NCBI RefSeq assembly: GCF_000315625.1
Contig: NW_005434571.1
Span: 126,092-190,091 of the forward strand
DNA from: Guillardia theta CCMP2712
Lineage: Eukaryota; Protista; Cryptophyta
DNA length: 64,000 nucleotides
Direction: 5' to 3'
In this document: piece by piece, positions 1,053 to 55,631 of the stretch
Layout of the letters: each line of letters starts with the position of its first letter
Position numbering within the stretch: the first letter of the stretch is position 1
Notes under the pieces: generated by a model
Told to the model about the DNA's origin: nothing
The model's database searches: none
The model's input: the letters and a program-made list of their open reading frames with translations, nothing else
Translations under genes and position numbers: made by a program

Positions 1053-2708
1053 CTCGTCCTTCCCCTCCTTCCTTCGCTGCTCCCCATCCTGCTCCTCGCA
1101 CACCAAAGATATGTTTCATCGTCTGACAAGCTCCGCAGAGCGTCATGGACGGCTATCGTGTCTGCATCTTTGCCTACGGCCAGGTTCATCCCCTCTCCTC
1201 TCCCCCTCCTCCCTGCTGACCTCGAGATAGACTGGCTCGGGCAAGACCCACACCATGGAAGGAAAGATCCGAGCAGGGAAGCAGGACGAGCAGAGGTGAA
1301 GCCTTGCTGGTGTCGCTTGCTACTATCTGACACTGGCACGCAGAGGAGTCGTGCCTCGCTGCATGGAGCGGCTGATTGAGCTGCGTAATGAGATGCAGAA
1401 GAGAGACTGGAGTATCAACTTGCAGGTGAAGGGGGGAGGAGGAGGAGGAGGAGGAGGAGGAGGAGGATGGATGGATACTGAACTTTTACTAGTGCTCCTG
1501 CCTGGAGATCTACAACGAAGTGATCCGTGACCTGCTCTGCGACAAGGAGGATGCTTCGAAGAAACTCGGTCGCTCTCGATGTTCATTCTCCTCCTCGTGC
1601 TCACAATTGTAGCAGAGATCAAGCACGACAAGTCCACCGGAGATGTCGTCGTCACCAACCTAACTCAGGTCCTCCTCGTTCTCCTCCACGACTACCAAAA
1701 GCTTGTTTGCTCCTTCTTCCACCTCCTTCTCTTGTAGTTTCGAACAAGGCTGACCACCACACAGCTTCCCGTGCAGTCAGAGGAAGAGATCTACCGCATC
1801 ATTCAGTCTGCCTCTCGGCGCAGAGAGACAGCTTCGACTGTGAGGTGACGAGAAGAGGACGAAGAGGGGAGAGGAGGCGACTTAGCTTGTGCTGGCAGGA
1901 ACGCCACGTCTTCCAGGAGCCACAGTGTGCTACAGGTTGTTGGTCAGCCATGATGTTGAGTTGCCTGACTGATGCGCAGCTGACTGTTGAATGCAAGCAC
2001 ATGCGGACGGGAGAGGTGCTCACTTCACCTCCTCCTCTTCCGCTCCTCCCCATCCTCCTCCTTTCTCTTCTCCCTCCTTCCTTTTCCTCTCTCGTTCTTT
2101 CTGCGCTTCCTCATGGCGTTTGTGCAGTCCAAGAAGGGGATTCTCAACATGGTGGACCTTGCGGGCAGCGAAAGGATCAGCATAGATCATGACAGCAAGA
2201 CTACCAAGGAAGCGCAGGCGAGTTTCGACTTTCTCAATTGTTCGATCTCCTCCTCCCTTGCTCGACCTCCTCCTCCCTTCGTCCTCCTCTTCCGCTTCCT
2301 TTTTTATCTCCATGCTGTCCTCGTGCTCACACCTGAGAGCAGAACATCAACAAGAGCTTGAGCTCGCTGCTCGGAGTGATTCAGGCGCTTGCAAGCAAGC
2401 AAGCTCACGTCCCCTTCCGCAACTCGAAGTTGACTCACCTCCTTTCGTCCTCCCTCGCGGGAGACGGCAAGGTACGCTCCTCTCCTCTCTTCGCTCTTCT
2501 CCTCACCTCGCTCCTCTCCTCTCTTCGCTCCTCTCCTCTCCTCGCTCCCTCTCCCTCCTTTTCTCCTCGTGAAGCTCCGCAGGCCCTCATGTTCGCCAAT
2601 CTGTCGCCTCGCCTACAGCACGTGCATGAAAGCATCAACACCCTTCGCTTCGCCGCGCAAGTCAACGTCTGCCAGCTCGGACATGGCAAGCTCAAGGCTG
2701 GGGAGTAG
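1..2708 (+). CDS. Kinesin-14 (C-terminal motor) family protein; multi-exon, 5' end outside window
   Basis: A long coiled coil leads into the kinesin-14 neck/motor start [25 protein letters not shown]. After joining GT-AG exons: FEYDEVF, P-loop FAYGQ|[21 protein letters not shown], switch I NATSSRSH, switch [41 protein letters not shown]. Stop at 2708. Confidence 0.95.
1008..1055 (+). repeat. (CT)n microsatellite in a kinesin intron
   Basis: Run of ctctct... inside the intron that starts at gtgctt (991). Confidence 0.9.
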
Positions 2709-2788
2709 AAGGAACAAGCTTTCAAAGAACAGAAGGATGAGGAGGAAGAGGATTTTAACTGACTGCTTGAAGAAACTAACTAATTCGA

Positions 2789-4363
2789 CTACTCAACTGA
2801 GTTGTTGTCAAGCACGATCTTGTTCTTGCTGTCCTCCGACACAAACAGACTCCCTCGCGAGTTCCCTCGCAAATCGTTGTGCTCGAACGTCCCCCATCCT
2901 CCGTCCTTCACTAGAATCCCGAACTCTCCGTTCTGAGTGATGCGATTCTGCTTGCACAGAGGCTTGCCGGCCTGCCAGCATGTGATGCCGGAGAGAGAGT
3001 TCTGAAAGATGTCGTTCTTCTCGATCTCACACCGCGAATGATGGTGCACGTCTACCCCTCCGCTGTGCTCGTGCCCGAAGATCTTGTTGCGGACGATCCT
3101 TGGGTTGCTGCTCTCCCGCACGTCGATGCCGGACAGTCCGTTGCTGTTGATGTCGTTGTCAGTGATGACGCCCCTTCCGTTGTCGAACACGGCGACGCCA
3201 TGCTTGCCGTTGCTGCGGATGCGGTTGAAGCGGATCTCAGGGCGGGACCCTTCGGAGATCTCGATGCCTGACTGTCCGTTGTGATGTATTTCTGTGTCCT
3301 CCACCACCCCCTCGCTCCCGTCGTAGAAGTGAACACCGGTCCCCGCGCACTGATAGATCTCACACCTTCGGATCTTGGGCTTCGTATCCTTGTGGTGAAC
3401 TGAGATGCACGTCAGGCTCGCGCTTGACAACTTGCAGCCTTCCACCACCAGCTTGCCCGCCATGATGTCGATACAGTTCCAGAAGCCGCTTCCTCGCTGC
3501 CTGATAGTGATGTTGGTGATGGACCCGAACTCAGTCTCTGCGATGATAGCGTCTCTCCCGTTAGTCTCGATGACGATGTCGTCGACATGCCCCTCCCCAA
3601 CTATCATGACCGGCCTCGACACTCGAAGCGTCTCCTTGTACTTTCCTGCTCGCACAACGATCTTGTCTCCGGACTTGGCAGCTTCCAAGGCATCGGCGAT
3701 GCGCTGATAACGATCTGACTTTGACACGTACAGCGTAGAGGTGATGTCGGAGAGGACTGGCGGTATGCTGACTTGTCGATCTTCATCCTTGGTGAAGGAG
3801 GAGAGGCGGACGGCAGAGTTGAGCTCATGAATCTCCTGCTTCACATCCCGCATGTCAAATATCAGCTGATCTACATTCCTCCTCATCTCTTCCATCCGGT
3901 TGTGCGCCAGGTCAGCTTGTTTACTTGCTCTGCTGCACTCCATGGAGTTCTGCTTGATCTTGCCCTGGAACAGCTCGAGCAGCTGCTGGATCCTCGAGTC
4001 ATAAGCATCCATCATCTCCTGACGCTCTGCTCGCTCCTTGTCCAGCAGCTTGTGAAGGTCATTCAGTTCCATCTCTCTCACATGCAGCGCCTTCTCCAAC
4101 CTCGCCATACGCTCGTCTCGCTCGGTCGCCGCGTTGTTGAGCAGGTCGACATGGTGCTGCAGGTTTTCCTCCCTGTGCCTGAACTCGTCTCTCCTCGTGA
4201 TCCTCGCTGCACACCCGGACTTGGCGAAAGAGCAGGAGAGGACCTCCAGCGGGCACTCGTGCTGCGCCTCCTCTCCCTTGAAGACCACGGCTCCGCATCC
4301 TCTCACGCACATGGCCACGTCCTCGATCCCCGGCTTGCCTCGTCCTTCGCTTACGGTATTCAT
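2789..4363 (-). CDS. TRAF-type zinc finger + coiled coil + parallel beta-helix (PbH1/CASH, FBXO11-like) protein; extra upstream exons possible
   Basis: CVRGC...HECPLEVLSCSFAKSGC...H...HHVDLL resembles a TRAF zinc finger. A heptad-rich middle region follows. YQRIADALEAAKSGDKIVVRAGKYKETL and many repeats such as IHHNGQSGIEI and IRSNGKHGVAV are typical of right-handed beta-helices. Confidence 0.8.
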   Translation of the reverse strand: MNTVSEGRGKPGIEDVAMCVRGCGAVVFKGEEAQHECPLEVLSCSFAKSGCAARITRRDEFRHREENLQHHVDLLNNAATERDERMARLEKALHVREMELNDLHKLLDKERAERQEMMDAYDSRIQQLLELFQGKIKQNSMECSRASKQADLAHNRMEEMRRNVDQLIFDMRDVKQEIHELNSAVRLSSFTKDEDRQVSIPPVLSDITSTLYVSKSDRYQRIADALEAAKSGDKIVVRAGKYKETLRVSRPVMIVGEGHVDDIVIETNGRDAIIAETEFGSITNITIRQRGSGFWNCIDIMAGKLVVEGCKLSSASLTCISVHHKDTKPKIRRCEIYQCAGTGVHFYDGSEGVVEDTEIHHNGQSGIEISEGSRPEIRFNRIRSNGKHGVAVFDNGRGVITDNDINSNGLSGIDVRESSNPRIVRNKIFGHEHSGGVDVHHHSRCEIEKNDIFQNSLSGITCWQAGKPLCKQNRITQNGEFGILVKDGGWGTFEHNDLRGNSRGSLFVSEDSKNKIVLDNNSVE

Positions 4364-28088: not shown

Positions 28089-31000
28089 GCGACCTCACCT
28101 TCGAGTCGAAGCATGATGGGGGGGTCCTCAAGGGTGACAAGGGGCCTCCATCGCTCCAATGCTGCTCCGTCTCCTTGCAGGTGAATTACTTGACGTCTAT
28201 GAAGCTTGTGCGCCGTCCGCTGACGTGAGTGTCTGGCAGGGAGGAGCGATGAGAGGAAGGGATGGCGAGATGTGCGATCAGCGAGCTATGAAGGGGAGGG
28301 CGCAGCTGAGATTTACCACTGTGGAGCTCCGTGACCTGACGATAGAGACTTGGATTCGGAGGAATGTCTTGTCGTTGAACACGTCGGAGACAATCGTCAG
28401 CTCGAGCAACGAAGCAAACATGACCGACGGCGACTTCTTCTGGTCCCTCGACAAGACTGGAGGTATCAACTTCCACATCGTCGGCCATGAGCGTTCTGTC
28501 GGGCCCTGCCCTGTGGGGAAGATTGACGATGTGGAGTGGCATCATATCGCAGTTGTGCGATCGTCGGACCCTTCTGTTGTCAACAACTGGATGTTCTACA
28601 AGGACGGACATCTTGTGTGGAGTACGCGGCACGAGGGCGTTCCGATATTTCATCCCTTCACCAACATCCTCATAGGCAAGCGGCACGGAGAGTTCTGGGG
28701 AGGGGACAGGAAGTGGAGACCAGGAGTCGGGGATCAGACCTGCCTGCAAGCAAGCCTCTGCCACCTTGCGGTTTACAACCATGCTGTAAGGGCAGAGAGA
28801 CTGTATCTCCATTACGCGTTTGAGGGGAAAGACAGCAAGGGTGAGATCACTGACAATGATGCAAAGAAGACAACGAGTATTGTCAAGCTTAACAAAGACA
28901 AGAGAGAGGAGCAGGAGGGTCGAGATCTGCTTTTGCCGCCTCGTCCTCCTGCTGGAGGTTTGACTCTGACGGCGCACAGGCGGGAGAGGTTCACGACGAA
29001 GTTGTGGAGCAGAACAAACGTCATGACATCGGCAGATGTCTCGTCGTTCTATGAGAGTCTGCAGCAGAACAACATCTGGAAACTCACGCGGCGAATGTTC
29101 TCTCCTACGATATCTGGAGAGAACTTCAATCGGGATGATGCGGTAGGAAACAGCACTTTGAATGTTCACCCCCCCGCAAGCTTCGCCACTAGCCTCGCTA
29201 GAAACCTGCTGGAGGAAACGGCTCAGAGCATGTTGGAGACAGGAATCAAGACTGCAGACCCGGTGAGACGTGTTAACGATAGACATGTTTCATGTTCATG
29301 ACCTACATATTCCGTGTTCATCGTAGTCATATTACATGTTCTTGATGACCATGTTGTGTGTTCGTGACAGTCTTGATGTATGATTGTCCAGAGGTGGTGA
29401 CGATTGACCGTGACATGCAGGAAGGACTCGGGTTATGGAGCTGTGCGTCCTATTTTTCCCTCGAAGAGCTGCCGAGACTTGCGATCGTGTGCAGGAGGTG
29501 GAAGACTTTGGGAGAAATGCTGTCAAACCTGTGCTTCCTTGTACGGTCGATCATCTTGCTAGGGCTCGAGAACACCTTGCTCAGTTTCGAGCTGGCGATT
29601 CATTGCATGAACGTGCAGGAGAGCTCGAGCGACGAGCTGTCAGCTGCCAAAGTTGTCCTCAACTCTCACCGAAACTTCCTGATCGAGATGCGATCGCTGA
29701 GCCAACGAGGAAAGCTGAGCAAAGTGCAGATTGCGGACTTTGCAATCAAGAGGAAACTGAAATCTGTGCAAGATGTTGGGTATGTCATCTCAGACACGAT
29801 CTACAAGGCCCAGAGGATACTGGGAAGCAACAGTAGGAGGGAGTCGATGACTGTTCAACAGCTCATGGACGTCAACTTGGAGGTAGAGGCCTACCGTCAC
29901 CGTCTGGCTGCTGTGCAGGAACTCGGGCTGATTGCTTGCGGGCCATTCGATGACAAGACGTTCCACTCCATCCTTGATCAGCTCAGTGAGTGGAAGCAGC
30001 GGAACCTTGTTTCTCTTCGTGATCTCGTTCAAGTTGCCAAGAGCTCCCAAGCGGGAGATCGCAACGAGGTTGACGGCAAGGTGGCGACGCTGGTCACCAT
30101 GACAACTGCAGAGGATCATATGCAGCAACGTGCGCATGTCCGGCTTGTCTGCGATGTCTCGTTCGGTTCCTCCCTCCAGCAGTTGGTTGTCTCGGTAGCT
30201 CGACAGGCGAACCGCAGCAAAGAAAGGTCCTGGACCTGTCACATCGTGAGGGTGGAGCCTTTTTTCCCCACTGCTCCTTCACAGCCTGGCGTGCTGATAG
30301 TCCTCGACACTGTGAAACAGGAAGCAGAGTCTGTCATAGCAGACCTCCGCCTGCTCCCCACTCGATTCCTCAGCGTCTCTAGCTGTGAAGAACCCTCCTC
30401 CTTCCTCTCCCTCTTCCTCCTCCCTCACGAGTCCCTAGCTCTCACCCAAGAGCGCAAGGTGCAACTGGCTCAGGCCTTGCACAAGGATCTGACGCTGGTG
30501 ACCGGAGCCTCCTGTACCCCGCACGTGCTGATGGAGAGGAACAACGTGGTGCTAGTGGAGCTACTTGATGGAGACTTGAAGCCCCTCACGCAAGACAAAC
30601 TGCGTCAGGCTCATCAGCTGCTCAGCGCGGAACTTGCCAACAGCTCGAGCAAATTCATGACGGGGACGGTGTCGAGAAGGGTTGTTGCTATCAGAGCTTT
30701 CTCAGCATGGTTGCCACGTCACAGCTGGAGCTCAGGTAACGACGTGATGACGAGCATGGACGTGGATGGGCCGATACTGGACGTGAGGAGTAACTTCGGA
30801 GATCTTGTGTGTGAGAGGAGACTATTGGACAGCATCATTCTCCCTGCATGCCGCAAGTACATCAAGGCAAAGACGAGCGACCTTGGGTGGATAGACTTGT
30901 GTTATGGAGGGTCCGAACAGATCGAATGGATGGAAACCGATCTCCGGCGGCTTCATCGGGAAGCTTTCATGCGCTCGTCTCCTCGCCTTGTGGGAGGCTG

Positions 31001-34000
31001 GCTAGACGTCGGTCTTTCGATAACTGTGATAGGAGAGAATGAAGGAATGGCTGTCGAAGACAATGAAGCTGAGGGGGAGGAAGAGATCAACCCTTTGATG
31101 CACTGGCTTGCGTTTTCTCGTGAGGAGCAAGCGGAGCCAAGAGTGTTCGATGGGCTGATGATGAAGAGAACGAAGACGTTTGTTGAGGATGAAAACTTCC
31201 TTGGTCTACCTCAGTCAGCTCGTTCAAGTATGATGTACTTTGCTGAAGATGAGGAGTCATGGGATGCGACGATGCAGGAGGTGGAGGAGACTTTGGGAGT
31301 GGGTCGATGCAGGATGTTTGATACGAATGTCCTTGGGTACTCTGCCCCAGTCAAGACTATCCTGAAGAAGCTGAGGGAGTGGAAGAGAGATTTGATCCTT
31401 GACTTGCAAGCTCAACGTGCGTTTCACGACTCCAGCAAGTTTGTGAGCGAGGACTCAAAGATTCTGTCAAACTTCATGACAAGAGCTTCTGAAGTTTCCG
31501 TCCGTCAAAGGCTTTACTCGGCGAGGCAGAAACGCAAGCTCATGAGCTACTGGCTCCTCTTGAAAGAGCACTACGACCGGAACGCGTCCCTGAGGCCCTC
31601 CAAGGCTGAGCTCGAAGACTGGGCTGAGATCCAAGAGCTGATGAACGACCCCTTCCTCCTCTCCCTCTCCAGAGAAGACGCAACTTCAGGCGTTCACGGA
31701 ATTCTCGATGGAGACGGCTTCACTTGCCCGGAGCAGGGCAACCCGATCCTTGCTGCCCATGGGCTGAAGGTAGAAGGAGCTGAGTTCCTTGTCCTGGCAG
31801 CAGAGATGGTCGCTAGAGTTTGTTCTGCCTACTCATCAGGTCATAGCTGGAGTGAGTCACAATCTTTGGTGCCGTACATGTCATTCTTGAAGAGGAGAGA
31901 ACGACAGGCCCAGTATCTAGTCAAGTACGCTGAACCCTTTCTAGAGCCCGAGGTTGTCATCAGTAAGACCTTCCCTCCCCACAAGGGGATGAGAGTGTAC
32001 TCCCCGTCGGAAGCTAGGGTTGGCGAGGTCGTGAAGGAGGCGGAGGGCTACGGGATACGTTGGCTGGACGAGGAAGGGGACACAGTCTCCAATCTAGTTT
32101 GGAAGACTAGCTCGCAGGCGACTTCTCGTTACGTTTCCAAGACTCAGTACACTCAGAATCGAGCTGGGGAATATCGGGTGAGCACCCCAAACTTTTGTGT
32201 GTTTCACCGGTTGAGGGCAGCAATTTTGAAATCTTTCAAGCACGAAGGGCAAGCGTCCGTCTTTGTTCTCACAGGAGACAACTGCACCGGCAAGACGGTT
32301 GTTGCTGCTAAGATGATCTTCAGCCTCTTGGAAGAGAAGCACCTGCAGGAGTCCAAGAGGTTGATATCCTTTCTTTTCGTTCCCGGAGGATGCTTCTTCT
32401 TCTCCGGCTCCTTGTCCTCGTTCGAGCAGTCGCCGGCAACGCTGCTTGAGAAGGTTTATTTCGATATCTGCAATCAGGTCCAAGGTGCGCAGCAGCTGCT
32501 CCAGGAAGACGCGTTCCTGCAGACAGAGTACAGCTTCTTTGATGTTGCAGACGTTAAGTCCTACTATCCGTCGGATGTTGCGCTGGAGCACAAGGACGTG
32601 GTTGAGAGGAGGAAGTACGAGAACGTGAAACTGAGATTCTACAAGCTCATGCTGTACATAGCATTGCAAGAGAGTTCGAGGATACAGCAAATTCTCGTCG
32701 TGTTTGATGGTCTTTCCTCATCTTCGATTGCTGTTCTGAAAAGGACATTTGATCATCTGTCTTCAAACATCTTGCAGCCTCTAAGAAAGATGGGACTCAG
32801 CAAACTCAACGTAGCAACTCTCATGACCGGAACGGAAAGACTTCACAGTGACGATTCAGCAAAAATCCCAGGTAAATTTCATATCGAGAAGCTGCTGAAG
32901 AGTGAGAAAGAAGCCCTTATCCTTCAGAAGCTGGTAAAGAACCCTGAGATGATCATCGCGCAGCAGTTCCACGAGAGTCTTCAACCGTTGTTGAATGCGC
33001 TGATTGAGAAGGAAGACAGCGAAAATGTTCTGTTCCTCTCAGCAGTCTGTCGGCGAATCGCAAGATTGACTCAGGAAAAGAAACTTGTCCACATCCAAGA
33101 ATGCCCGACGACTCTGAGAGACCTCTTCATCAAGTCGATTGTCCGGCCCATGGAAACTCGCTTCGGCCGGCACGTAGTGCAAGCCTTACTCCTCAGCCTG
33201 TTGTGTTGCCCTGAAGGAATTCCAGTATCTGATTGCAAACAGATGCTGCAGCAGTACCTCTCGCCGCACCAGACTTCTGGTTATATCCCTATGAATGACC
33301 TTGCGTTCTACCAGATCGTGGCTGAATTCCAGGACTTTATGACTCCCTTGCATTCCAACTGCTGCAGGCTCAGTTTCAAGCATGATTTCATTAGCAAGCT
33401 TGTACTGCAGCATTACTCGATCGCCACATTCGAGGACCAAGTCATCACTGCGACAAAGGAATCCAAGAAAGAGACGTTGGAGGTCGACAACTCAGGGTAC
33501 GTCTTCATTCCCGGGCAAGTATGGTCGAAGCACAAGGATGAGGTACAGGTACAGCTTTACGTGAAGGAGAGTAGCGAGCTATCTGTCATCGACCATCCTC
33601 TCTACCATGTTCGCTTCCTGCAGGAGGTAGAGGTTGTCACTGAAGAGTCCTACGACCTTGAGCCGGTTGACAAGCCCAAGATCCGTCGAGCTCTCAACAT
33701 CCCGGTTGTACCTAAGGGCGTCGGCCAGGCCTGGCCCTTCGTGCAGGCGCCTGACCTTCGTGACCGGATCCTTCAACGGCCGTTGCTCAGCGTTGCATCT
33801 CACAGCTCCGATGACTCTCACCATCGCAGTAGCGTCTTGCGCGGCTTCCCGTCTGTTCCAGAGAAGCGCTACTCCCTCACGGCTTTCTCAGCTCAGGCCA
33901 ACCGCCCCGATCGTTGGAGCAAGGCAGAGGGTCTCAACCCAGGTCCTCCCTCCTTCCTGTACCCTAGCAAACCTGAGAAGAGGGTTGAGGTGCCGCGAGT

Positions 34001-34166
34001 GAAGCCGTCTCCCTCTCTCACAGCGTCACACTGGTCTCTTCCTGGATTCCCTCCCACGTACTCTTGGCAGGACGACAATAGCGAGGATGTTGCCAAGCAG
34101 AACAACAGAGAGCGAGTGAAAGCGTACATGACAAGGAGAAAGCAGGATGTGTTCGGCGAACGTTGA
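19876..34166 (+). CDS. Giant (about 4500 aa) spliced protein: MORN repeats, DUF4062-like + NACHT-like P-loop module 1, LamG with polyQ, DUF4062-like + NACHT-like module 2
   Basis: MORN exon YFGGVVAGLKHGKGTYVWANGSKYEGEW... In-frame GT-AG joins link it to ORF 20792..28228, then through intron 28181-28239 to ORF 28159..29301, then through introns at about 29263-29420 to ORF 29358..34166. Walker A motifs GKAGSGKS and GDNCTGKT. DUF4062-like DLVCERRLLDSIILPACRKY...WIDLCYG. LamG TIETWIR...WHHIAVVR...FYKDG. Confidence 0.7.
28007..28084 (+). repeat. (CAG)26 coding trinucleotide repeat (polyQ)
   Basis: Uninterrupted cag run read as KSK-Q26-KRD. Confidence 0.95.
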
Positions 34167-37829: not shown

Positions 37830-38450
37830 GGTACTGCCAGCCTCTTGCACCGCTCACGGACCAGTAGAAGTGCATGGTTGAGGCCACGACCGTGGTCACG
37901 AGGGATACCTCTGAATGCTCACGTTTCAGGCTCCGGAAGGTGTCGAATGTCCGAAACGGTGTAACATAGGAACGACGGCCTGACCCGTGAATGAGGCTGT
38001 GACTGTCTTCTTCTCGTGACCCGCCTGACGGACGGGGGCCGTCGAACTCCGAAGGTGACAAAAGTGTCGCCACCCGGCCGTGTCGCGCCCGCAACCGTCT
38101 CACAGTCACCGGGCGGAGTCCGACGGTCGGACTCACAGGCTGACGGTCTACGGTCAGTGAATCGGATCCGTCACGCCGCCGGTTCCCGGCGGCCCCGGGG
38201 ACCGGGCTCGCCGCAAGGCCCGGCCCCCGCAGGCTGCCAGCCGCGGAGGCTCACCGTGGCAGCATCTTCTTTGCTGATTGTTAACTTAACTTTGAGTAAA
38301 GACAAAGTTAAGTAGACCGCAGCCTGGCAGGGCTTTTTACTCAAAGTTAAGGCAGGGCGGCTGCGGCCGGGCCCGGCTCACTGAGTCAGGAGTCCGGCCG
38401 GGCCCGGCCAACTTGGCCCGGGCCCGGTGAGTGCGCGGCAGTTTGATTTG
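37830..38450. repeat. GC-rich degenerate repeat island with element-end-like AT motif
   Basis: tgattgttaacttaactttgagtaaag (38276-) and inverted tttactcaaagttaag (about 38336-) match the motifs at 12091-12122 and 60657-60705. Confidence 0.65.
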
Positions 38451-38495: not shown

Positions 38496-41056
38496 ATGGC
38501 AGTACCGCGAGGAATGGTGATAGGGGGGAGGGGAGGGAGGGGAAGGGGAAGAGGAAGAGGGAAGGATAATCTGAGCAATGAATGGGATACAAGGAGAGAA
38601 GGAACAGGGGAGGAGGATACAGATGCTGATGTGGAGATGGTGGAGACCCAAGGGGTTCAAGCACAGGATCCGAGGGAGCTTGACCCTGGGACGCTGGTAA
38701 TGGTCGAACAAGGGAGCGAGGAGGGGAGGTTTAGAGGTACCATAGTGGATGGATGGGACGGTGCTCTGTTTCACGTGAGATACATGGACAAGCACAAGAA
38801 GGATGATGAGGTAAGTCGAGTGTCTGCATGGACATTGATGTACTGTGCTCAGTGATTCTGATACCGAACACGCTTGCAGATCGTTGAGATCAGCAGGATT
38901 TTCAAGCTGCGAAGAATGTGCAATAATCACATTCAGATTCAAAGCGTGAAGACATCGCATTCCAAATCAACGAATGACGCGCGGGTTGCCCCCCAGGATG
39001 TTCATGTTCAACTTCAGACGATCGTCGAGAACCATGAACCAACAAGCCGTCGGGATGTAACACTACTGATGGATCAGAATGCATCGTTGCCTGATTCTGC
39101 ATCTGAAGATGAAGTTGTTAATGGCATGTTATATAAGGACAAAGAGGGGAATGCGGAGGAAAGGAACTTACACACTGAGGTAGAAACTCTGATCAATGAA
39201 CTGAAGCTGAGGCGGGGGAGCAAAGGGGTTGCTTCCAGGAGTAAAGAGCTCGACCAGATACAGGAGTATCTCATGCAACAGAAGGAGAAGATGGAGAATG
39301 CTGTGAGAGTTGAGTTTGAGGTCGATGCACAGTTCGTTGGCTTGGTGGTCGGGAAACGAGGAAGCAACATCGCAAAGGCATCTGCTGTTGATGGAGTGGT
39401 CAAGATCGACGTGCAGGAGACAAGAGTTGCTATCATTGCTGAGTCTATGGAAGCAGCCGAGGCTGCAAGACAGATGCTTGAGTATAGGAGACTAAACATC
39501 CCTGTCGAGAGAAGAACTACTCGGCTTCTGGTGGGGAAGGGGGGTAAGAACTTGAAAGATCTTCAAAGCAGCTCGGGGGTGTCACGAATCAAGATCGATG
39601 ATGGAAAAGGAATAATCGAGCTTCTTGGTACACAGATAGTTTTGTTTTTGACCACTGTATTTGTCATGTCATAACGAGTTTCCTGCAGGAAATAGCTCAT
39701 CGCTTGAGAAAGCCCGTCGAGGGATTGAGTTGATTGCCCGATTCGTTTCTCAGCAAGATGAGTTCATTGAAGGATCAAGAGATTTGCACAGAGACGTGAA
39801 TATGATGATTGGTAACTCTGTTCGGTCGGAGAGCCAGGGCGGGATGTTTTTTTCCTTGGTGGAAGGTGATGGTGAAAACGGAAATCAGTTCGTGTTCACT
39901 GATGAAGGGATGAACTATACAATAGAAGTGCTGAGTTCTAAACTTGGCTTGATTATTGGTCATCATGGGACGAAGATCAAACAGCTGAAGGAGGCTTCAA
40001 AGTGTGGTATTGAGATCGTGCGAGGGCAAGAAGAGATCAGCAAAATTTACATCACCGCGCTGAGTGATGACGCGGATCCTGACCTTGCGCTATCATTGAT
40101 CAACAACATCGTACTGGATCCCCAGCCAGGACAAACATACGCACAGGCATCAATCACAAAAGTTGCAAACTTCGGGGTTTTTGTTGCGATCGGGGAAGGG
40201 AGAGAGGGGCTGCTGCATGTCTCCGATGTCCCGCTCATGAAGAGTGGAGCTATCAGTTATAATGTAGGACAGAAAGTGAATGTTGTAGTTACTAGCGTAG
40301 ATGATCGCGGTAAGATTCGTCTCGGACTCATGCAACACGACGAGGACGGTATCTTGCCCGACTCGAATGGGATCCCCGTGAGAAAAAAGAAAGAGGCTTT
40401 AGGTCCGATTGCGAGCTCCTGCGTTGCTCCTTTCTCACCTCCCTACTGCAGATGTCCGCCAAGGAGAGGAATGGCCGGCGCTGCTCGGGCCCATGCAAGA
40501 AAGCCGAGATGAATGGTACGCGCGAATCAGGAGCCAGAGGAAAGACGCCAGCCATCTTCACGCCAACGCTTCCGTCCCCAGCAAGAACTTTCCCGCAGCC
40601 AAGGACTCGAACTCCTGGGATGAGAACTCGAGGACCAGGCCGCGGCAGCATGCTCCTGTCTCCTCTCCGGAGGCCCCTTCAGCTTCCATACCGCACACCC
40701 CGTCAGCTAACCGCAGCATCGGCCATACACCCACTGGCCCTCGCCATCTTGGAAGGAGCGCACAGATGGAGTCTACCGGGCCTACACGAAACAGGATGGA
40801 GCAGCCACGTACCTTTCGTGTGGCCGATGCAGACTACTCACGCGAGTACGTCCTTTATGCTCCCAAAGAGTCCGCGATGGGAAGAAGAGAAGGGGTTGGT
40901 GAGTCATTCAGACTCTCTGTGACCCTCTTCTTTTCTGAGCTGACTGACGTTGTCGTAGGCCTCTCGAGACCGTCTGATCGCGATGAGACAGAGGCAGGAG
41001 GTCAGGAGATCACGTCACTACGGCAGCGGGTGGCCCAGGCTCGCGGTAGGAGATGA
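38496..41056 (+). CDS. RNA-binding protein: RGG + Agenet/Tudor-like + FMRP-like KH-KH + PNPase-like KH-S1; 4 inferred introns
   Basis: GGRGGRGRGRGRG. LDPGTLVMVEQ...FRGTIVD...FHVRY (Tudor/Agenet-like). KH GxxG loops VVGKRGSNI, LVGKGGKNL and IIGHHGTKI. S1 ITKVANFGVFVAIGEGREGLLHVSDV...VGQKVNVVVTSVDDRGKIRL. Introns 38811-38879 and 39628-39688 keep the frame. Confidence 0.88.
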
Positions 41057-41059
41057 TTG

Positions 41060-41480
41060 AAGTTTTGAAGAAAGTTGGGGAGTTTTCTCGGATCCAATCT
41101 CGGTGTCATCGGCTATCATAGTACGGTATGCGGCGCGGCAGTGCAGAATGGCAGTTGAAACCGAGCCTCGGAACTTGAACCCTATTAGCCTCAGCCGCAT
41201 GATGACGCAGTCAGTGACCTTGACTGCCATGATGAATCTTGACTTTCGGATGAAAGAGCCTCCGAGTCTCGTCTCGCTGCTGCCAGCGTCACGCGACCGG
41301 GGTCCGATGTTCGACTCACGCTGAGGAATCATTGACGGCGTACCGTTCTGGGTGGGCCGGGGCCCGGGCCCTGCAAGTTCCGGTTGAAGTTCACCTCACT
41401 GAGTCAGTCAGGCCGCAGGATTACACCTAGACGGACCGTGCAGCGGAAATCGGCCGAGTCCAGGAGGCTGACATGATGGT
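41060..41480. repeat. GC-rich degenerate island with the same insertion vocabulary
   Basis: Dense cggcc, ccggg, gagtc, ctgag and cagt words; no credible ORF. Confidence 0.45.
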
Positions 41481-55601: not shown

Positions 55602-55631
55602 ATGATGATGATGATTATGACTCAGTGAGAT

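Follow-up and report, generated by a model that had tools for sequence, protein, structure and literature searches.

Two described groups of RNA-binding proteins bear on the gene reported here. In the fragile X (FXR) proteins of animals, FMR1, FXR1 and FXR2, two KH domains, KH1 and KH2, follow one another without a spacer and pack as a rigid pair. A review dates this gene family to the ancestor shared by cnidarians and bilaterians, when the first nervous systems appeared (PMC4216185), and two 'FMR/FXR-like' proteins were listed in 2010 among the Argonaute partners of Toxoplasma (PMC2877743). PNPase (polynucleotide phosphorylase), an RNA-degrading enzyme and the second group, combines an RNase PH core with a KH domain and an S1 domain, in that order, at its C-terminus. 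The gene considered here lies in a stretch of 64,000 nucleotides (the window) of contig NW_005434571.1 of the cryptophyte Guillardia theta CCMP2712, where it occupies positions 38496 to 41056 of the forward strand, and its product resembles both groups in different parts.

The locus is most probably an expressed nuclear gene for a non-catalytic RNA-binding protein of several modules, one member of a small conserved protist family. Its FXR-homologous core would consist of one Tudor-like barrel, a long helix, KH1-KH2 as a rigid pair and a helix after KH2, and a PNPase-type KH-S1 module would have been added downstream of this core. A sequence-only reading of the window had proposed a chimera of this kind, and the peptides that it quoted are all present: the tandem KH strings in an open reading frame (ORF) at 38874..39674 and the S1 strings in an ORF at 39661..40512. 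From the N-terminus onward the protein contains an RGG run, a single Tudor-like barrel, KH1-KH2, KH3, S1 and a disordered tail with conserved motifs. The coding span and the domains are as follows.

38496..41056, plus strand: whole coding span; five exons, 2322 coding nucleotides, 773 amino acids and TGA, with exon sum and frames checked.
38523..38561, plus strand: RG/RGG run GGRGGRGRGRGRG, residues 10-22, read from the translation.
38679..38909, plus strand: Tudor-like barrel, split by intron 1; motif WDGALFHVRY...DEIVEISRI, conserved in the family alignment.
39306..39491, plus strand: KH1, FXR type; GXXG loop GKRG (VGKRG from 39348), by Pfam KH_1 and alignment with KH1 of FMR1 and FXR1.
39492..39753, plus strand: KH2, FXR type; GXXG loop GKGG (VGKGG from 39531), straddling intron 2.
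39916..40110, plus strand: KH3; GXXG loop GHHG (IGHHG from 39955), first half of the PNPase-type module by Pfam, the PNPase profile and PDB matches.
40126..40344, plus strand: S1 domain (FGVFVAIGEGREGLLHVS...DDRGKIRLGL), second half of the PNPase-type module; Pfam S1, E 1.9e-11.

Exons were used singly as search queries, and natural full-length homologues represent the whole protein. Pfam recognizes KH_1 at two places in exon 2 (E 3.9e-12) and at one in exon 3 (E 3.1e-7), where the S1 domain follows. The GXXG loop is intact in all three KH domains. An RGG box had been put forward as a further point of resemblance to FMRP; the run is there, but it is N-terminal and that of FMRP is C-terminal. 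It matches the RGG N-terminus of uS5 as low complexity only.

The assignment of KH3 and S1 to the PNPase type is supported by profile searches, by PDB chains and by structure comparison. The last part of the NCBIfam PNPase profile (positions 548-680 of 683, about 133 positions) matches exon-3 residues 77-213 as one stretch with E 3.5e-21, which bears out the earlier view that the third KH and the S1 domain resemble the C-terminal module of PNPase. PNPase chains in the PDB match residues 76-218 of the same exon, again in one stretch (E 5e-14), and in a Foldseek search with the model of the homologue P0014 the PNPase KH-S1 construct 6qh2 ranks third. Compared with PNPase structures (6qh2, 3cdi and 7ogk), the order and spacing of KH and S1, the intact GXXG loop and the S1 signature residues are the same. 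The Guillardia protein differs in that its gene is eukaryotic and intron-bearing and in that no RNase PH core domains are found: Pfam gives KH_1 and S1 only, and the PNPase profile is matched only in its C-terminal part, at positions 548-685. No phosphorolytic activity is predicted for this reason, and the protein would bind RNA without degrading it.

The KH3-S1 part might instead owe nothing to PNPase, if KH and S1 domains of the ordinary kind had been joined independently in the same order. Taken singly, the S1 domain has matches in many S1 proteins, and bacterial ribosomal protein S1 outranks PNPase in the PDB by whole-sequence score. Nor is the module a recent copy of the genome's own PNPase, since it is only distantly related to the PNPase-like loci on contigs C102 and C182 (41% identity over the S1 part, E 2e-4). 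However, the scores of bacterial ribosomal protein S1 are sums over several S1 repeats of the target, and that protein has four to six tandem repeats where the Guillardia protein has one S1 domain. The highest-scoring single alignments cover both domains and the linker between them and end at the C-terminus of the PNPase profile, with E 3.5e-21 against about 1e-9 for families that contain S1 only. Other common proteins with both domains, NusA and the exosome subunits Rrp4 and Rrp40, have S1 before KH, the opposite of the order seen here, and Rrp4 matches exon 3 with an E-value of only 0.03. Independent joining is thus unlikely, and descent of the module from PNPase is preferred.

For the upstream half, sequence, a tree and the packing seen in a homologue's model support a KH1-KH2 pair of the FXR type, not of the vigilin, FUBP or generic KH type. 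The best PDB match of exon 2 is 2qnd, the KH1-KH2 pair of human FMR1 (45.5 bits, E 7.3e-11), in one stretch that aligns exon-2 residues 145-240 with chain residues 7-104 at about one third identity; FUBP2 (E 4.6e-6) and KH1 of FXR1 (E 2.6e-5) come next. The FMRP strings that the sequence-only reading had quoted agree with the actual 2qnd alignment. Among 1.84 billion representative proteins, exon 2 has 462 matches at E<=1e-3, 61 of them at E<=1e-10, which is far beyond chance. Named matches include insect and nematode FXR proteins and proteins of the haptophytes Scyphosphaera and Prymnesium and the labyrinthulid Mucochytrium. A Pfam scan covered 110 of the best 150 of the 462; KH_9 (KH0 of FMRP) was present in 31 of these, Agenet in 24, Tudor_FRX1 in 20, FXMRP1_C_core in seven and S1 in three, and the marker domain of any other KH family in none. 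When the family was aligned profile to profile with 46 FXR-like proteins (hhalign), the match extended from the barrel through the helix after KH2 (probability 99.8%, E 5e-29).

The structural evidence comes from the AlphaFold model of P0014, in which the predicted local distance difference test score (pLDDT) is 96-98 across KH1-KH2. Foldseek places 2qnd first, with a target template modelling (TM) score of 0.81-0.85 and a root-mean-square deviation (rmsd) of 2.3-2.8 Å over 137-142 columns, whereas the tandems of PCBP2, IMP, Nova and FBP reach a TM score of 0.45 at most, with rmsd of about 10-20 Å. Only KH1-KH2 of FMRP superposes as a rigid pair; therefore the packing of the two domains, beyond their fold, is FXR-like. 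In a quick maximum-likelihood tree of KH1-KH2, whose root is not reliable, the S1-bearing family forms one clade within the FXR-like set (Shimodaira-Hasegawa-like approximate likelihood ratio test, SH-aLRT, 99), and the generic multi-KH protein of the genome is attached by a very long branch, of length 5. A phylogeny of the KH pair and structure prediction had both been named as checks; the tree puts the pair among FXR-like proteins, and the homologue's model matches FMRP best.

Comparison with the animal proteins (2qnd, 2cpq and 4ova) shows how far the likeness extends. Besides the KH pair with its missing spacer and rigid packing, the two have in common helices on either side of the KH pair (before KH1 and after KH2), a barrel where FXR proteins have Agenet 2, and an RG/RGG run. 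The fusion protein differs in the position of this run, in its additional KH and S1 domains, and in a KH2 that lacks the long variable loop. It has only one barrel in place of a tandem Agenet/Tudor, with no Agenet 1 (Tudor_FRX1) found by Pfam. No KH0 (Pfam KH_9) was found between barrel and KH1, in exon 2 or in the six frames of the genome; a home-made iterated KH0 profile was discarded because it drifted onto ordinary KH domains. The linker before KH1 is poorly conserved between Guillardia and the related cryptophyte Hanusia, and part of it is modelled as disordered in P0014 (pLDDT <50). The FXR C-terminal core has no Pfam match, and only the helix just after KH2 aligns with FXR-like proteins. 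Because Agenet 1, KH0 and the C-terminal core are missing, the protein is considered FXR-related and not a full FXR member.

FXR-like proteins with the same type of KH1-KH2 pair occur in other non-animal hosts: Scyphosphaera apsteinii (P0354), Prymnesium (P0025), Mucochytrium (P0039) and Guillardia itself. Exon 2 matches such proteins with E 1e-13 to 1e-16, and Agenet 2 occupies a colinear position in them, although Pfam Agenet is matched in P0354 and not in P0025. Unlike the fusion protein, they have only a low-complexity or RGG tail beyond KH2, and Pfam found no S1 and no third KH domain in those of them that were scanned. The Guillardia representative was located by tblastn as a multi-exon gene with short exons and the order Agenet 1-Agenet 2-KH1-KH2 on contig C78, at about 61.0-62.4 kb (L014:7017-8435), and a near-identical second copy lies on C213 (L015:6941-8359). 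Since a canonical FXR-like gene is present in the genome, the fusion gene is taken to represent a second, divergent FXR-related lineage.

The fusion gene could alternatively be the cryptophyte orthologue of animal FMR1/FXR, in which case Agenet 1 and KH0 would have disappeared and KH-S1 been acquired. In the tree the family falls within the FXR-like sequences, and the six-frame translation of the genome (87.1 Mb in 669 contigs), when searched with exon 2, with an FXR1-like protein of an aphid and with an FXR-like protein of a haptophyte, gave the KH1-KH2-KH3-S1 locus alone. These searches, however, miss genes that are cut into short exons, including the KH exons of the C78 gene. In the reciprocal matching that had been recommended as a check, the aphid and haptophyte queries pick this locus best, but in a search that misses the KH exons of the gene on C78 and C213. 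The statement that this is the only FXR-type locus in the genome was rejected once tblastn had revealed the canonical gene. Furthermore, the tree shows the family as a clade of its own, next to Agenet-bearing clades and other FXR-like clades of protists; haptophyte and labyrinthulid sequences in which the KH pair is spaced as usual belong to those neighbouring clades. Orthology of the fusion gene with animal FXR genes is accordingly quite improbable, and a second FXR-related lineage is the preferred reading.

A third explanation, that the protein is a generic multi-KH binder like vigilin, FUBP or PCBP and that its likeness to FMRP is what any tandem KH protein would give, is very improbable and already largely refuted. 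It draws on the GXXG core common to KH domains, on the presence of FUBP2, IGF2BP, PCBP2 and Nova in the PDB list, at weaker E-values, and on the lack of any match between the protein and the FXR-specific Pfam models. Yet the top match is FMR1, in a single alignment over both domains and their linker, the companion domains in the 110 scanned library matches are FXR ones only, and the profile-profile match (E 5e-29) reaches into the flanking helices. The rigid-pair superposition separates FMRP (TM 0.81-0.85) from the other tandems (<=0.45), and the genome's own generic multi-KH protein stands apart on its branch of length 5.

The two halves of the protein are encoded on one transcript, whose parts are listed below.

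38496..38810, plus strand: exon 1; 105 codons, phase 0, with the start codon, RGG run, an acidic stretch and barrel strands 1-4.
38811..38879, plus strand: intron 1; 69 nucleotides, GT-AG, from Hanusia tblastn and RNA contig L011.
38880..39627, plus strand: exon 2; last Tudor strand, poorly conserved linker, long helix, KH1 and most of KH2.
39628..39688, plus strand: intron 2; 61 nucleotides, GT-AG, absent from the ORF of the Hanusia orthologue and retained in L011.
39689..40402, plus strand: exon 3; end of KH2, helical linker, KH3 and S1.
40403..40451, plus strand: intron 3; 49 nucleotides, GT-AG, a 49-nucleotide gap in the L011 alignment.
40452..40898, plus strand: exon 4; disordered tail with the conserved motif QESRDEWYARIRSQRKD (40496-40546) and DADYSREY.
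40899..40958, plus strand: intron 4; 60 nucleotides, GT-AG, from Hanusia tblastn and L011.
40959..41056, plus strand: exon 5; C-terminal motif SRPSDRD..EAGGQE..SLRQRVAQARGRR, kept in Hanusia and P0014, then TGA.
41057..41424, plus strand: 3' untranslated region, at least that far, since L011 ends at 41424.

The start at 38496 is the first in-frame ATG and is preceded immediately by in-frame stops. Both ends of the coding sequence, the ATG at 38496 and the TGA at 41056, were set by tblastn with the Hanusia phi protein P0001 and by L011, and the four introns, all GT-AG, were placed by reading the DNA together with the same tblastn alignment. P0001 comes from a transcriptome, and barrel, KH1, KH2, KH3, S1 and the C-terminal motifs follow one another in it as a single unbroken ORF; its alignment gaps coincide exactly with the introns. 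L011 is an RNA-type contig of the Joint Genome Institute (JGI), 2707 nucleotides long, from sample 3300017164. It covers all five exons (38540-41424), agrees with the exon 1 sequence of the window at 100% identity, and has introns 1, 3 and 4 removed. The exon 1 donor, GTAAGT at 38811, is borne out by both sources. The protein P0166, encoded on L011, is the gene's own product from an internal methionine and reads ...KKKEALDVRQGEEW... across the junction of intron 3. Separate transcripts for the two halves would have overturned the sequence-only reading, and the Hanusia ORF and L011 instead agree on a single one.

Both of the first two introns fall inside domains, intron 1 within the Tudor-like barrel and intron 2 within KH2, whose last helix, NSSSLEKARRGIELIARF, is encoded in exon 3. 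Because intron 2 is retained, L011 was called as two ORFs of 354 and 381 amino acids. That split would fit two adjacent genes, FXR-like and KH-S1, misread as one or joined by read-through, but such an artefact can hardly be right, given that neither half holds a complete set of domains without the other, that the Hanusia phi transcript continues as one ORF over the junction, that all five exons lie on L011, and that the relatives P0014, P0009 and P0375 show the identical order in single intronless ORFs on genomic contigs (L005, L006 and L012). The retention itself may be regulated, giving a truncated Tudor-KH1-KH2 product, or L011 may merely be an unprocessed molecule.

Several observations weigh against an FXR-homologous core joined to a PNPase module. 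L011, which keeps intron 2 and whose product would be truncated after the strands of KH2, is the sole RNA contig available for the gene from this species. The structures used are those of the homologues P0014 and P0240 and not of the Guillardia protein itself. KH and S1 are common domains, and the PNPase origin of KH3-S1 depends on the profile match at the level of the module. The canonical C78 gene is likelier to be the FXR orthologue than the fusion gene. Pfam Agenet, Tudor_FRX1, KH_9 and FXMRP1_C_core are unmatched on the exons and at the locus.

The remaining counterevidence concerns the N-terminal barrel. In the homologue models it has five to six strands and pLDDT 81-89, and its Foldseek and VIA matches are nearly all Tudor or royal-family domains (TDRD4, PHF1, Esa1, TDRD3 and SMN). 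The scores are middling (best Foldseek E 4e-3, best VIA Z 7.5), and no Foldseek match of the N-terminal model reaches E<=0.001; the Tudor assignment is made because the weaker Foldseek matches are uniform in kind and VIA gives Z 6-7.5. General Tudor domains outrank FMRP, whose 4ova appears at Foldseek rank 21. The barrel is colinear with FXR Agenet 2, its G.F.V.Y...DEIVE..R corresponding to the FXR-like consensus GeFyvVeY..deiVeleri, but taken by itself this link is weak (hhalign E 8.5e-4, probability 24%; 5-10 bits with a home-made profile). Thus, of the upstream Agenet/Tudor-like domain suggested earlier, the Tudor-like part stands as a predicted fold, and the Agenet part meets a weak Agenet 2 alignment and an unmatched Pfam Agenet.

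Members of the family are already in the databases but had not been recognized as such. The nearest named relative is P0001 (UniProt A0A7S0DVW8), 674 amino acids with a truncated N-terminus, to which the Guillardia exons are 50-68% identical. Among the best 150 library matches, only P0001, P0009, P0014 and the fragment P0006 share the KH3-S1 part; word searches with P0001 and the family alignment added P0233 and the metagenome sequences P0234-P0236, and thereafter reached bacterial ribosomal protein S1 and PNPase. A word search with exon 2 gave no match, but its length window shuts out full-length relatives, and the result does not speak for their absence. Hanusia, P0009, P0014 and P0233/P0375 have the full architecture of the Guillardia gene, C-terminal motifs included, and identity over the KH pair to the latter three is about 36-39%. 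The tail motifs of exon 4 are common to P0001, P0014 and P0233, and QESRxEW and RPSDRDG...SLRxR are common to members. Metagenome members differ in an insertion in KH3 and an RG-rich stretch in the tail.

Outside the cryptophytes, members come from marine metagenomes, on intron-poor contigs of 56-64% G+C; no dinoflagellate spliced leader was found for these non-cryptophyte members. Next to them on the contigs lie eukaryotic genes, one of the EML-like beta-propeller/HELP/DM10 type and DUF829, in conserved order on the contig of P0014 and that of a relative (L005 and L012). No member carries more than an automatic label, such as 'NusA-like', 'polyribonucleotide nucleotidyltransferase' or, for Hanusia, 'S1 motif domain-containing protein'. 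P0152, which is in the cluster of P0014 and at least 90% identical to it, is listed by NCBI as 'MAG: KH domain-containing protein, partial [Promethearchaeia archaeon]'. As the neighbours are eukaryotic, this Asgard label probably reflects a mis-binned eukaryotic contig. The Tara contig L012 carries an ORF of 70 amino acids at 1311-1523, ending 10 nucleotides before the family gene at 1534-3642, whose called product begins mid-barrel; the two are probably parts of a single gene, interrupted by a frameshift or by a short intron.

The domain composition suggests how such a protein could act. Each of the three KH domains, the S1 domain and the RGG run would grip single-stranded or structured RNA, and the Tudor-like barrel could dock on a partner, perhaps by way of a methylated residue. 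Since the N-terminus has no hydrophobic signal sequence, the protein is unlikely to be organellar. The protein may act in the cytosol or nucleus as a scaffold of messenger ribonucleoprotein or as a regulator of translation or stability, like FXR proteins.

A literature search found no published description of an FXR/KH-S1 fusion, which appears to be undescribed. The earlier claim of a new architecture holds to that extent, but FXR-like proteins had already been mentioned in a protist, Toxoplasma (PMC2877743). The fusion gene, the canonical algal FXR-like gene and the haptophyte and labyrinthulid relatives contradict the cnidarian-bilaterian origin given for the family (PMC4216185). Among protists the KH1-KH2 core of FXR proteins is widespread, and it has been put to use in further domain combinations; the fusion hints that its ancestral job may have been general handling of single-stranded RNA, nothing neural. 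The assignment also corrects the database labels, under which members now stand as NusA-like, PNPase or S1-motif proteins and one as the product of an Asgard archaeon.

A more far-reaching scenario is rather doubtful. The FXR core would predate animals and have split early in eukaryotes into at least two lineages, one of which captured the substrate-binding KH-S1 module of PNPase and was kept in cryptophytes and a group of marine picoeukaryotes. Its product may then be a non-catalytic adaptor that passes the mRNAs it binds to 3'-5' decay or small-RNA machinery, a role that, if true, is not known for animal FXR proteins.

Two features of the surrounding DNA may be added. Upstream of the gene and on the same strand, the window contains an uninterrupted ORF of 1602 amino acids at 29358-34166 (plus strand). 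The 13-mer CTCACTGAGTCAG occurs at 38377-38389 (plus strand), 41395-41407 (plus strand) and 55617-55629 (minus strand), three matches where 0.25 are expected by chance. Two of the copies flank the gene, about 120 nucleotides before the ATG and about 340 nucleotides after the stop, and every copy adjoins GGGCCCGG-type runs.

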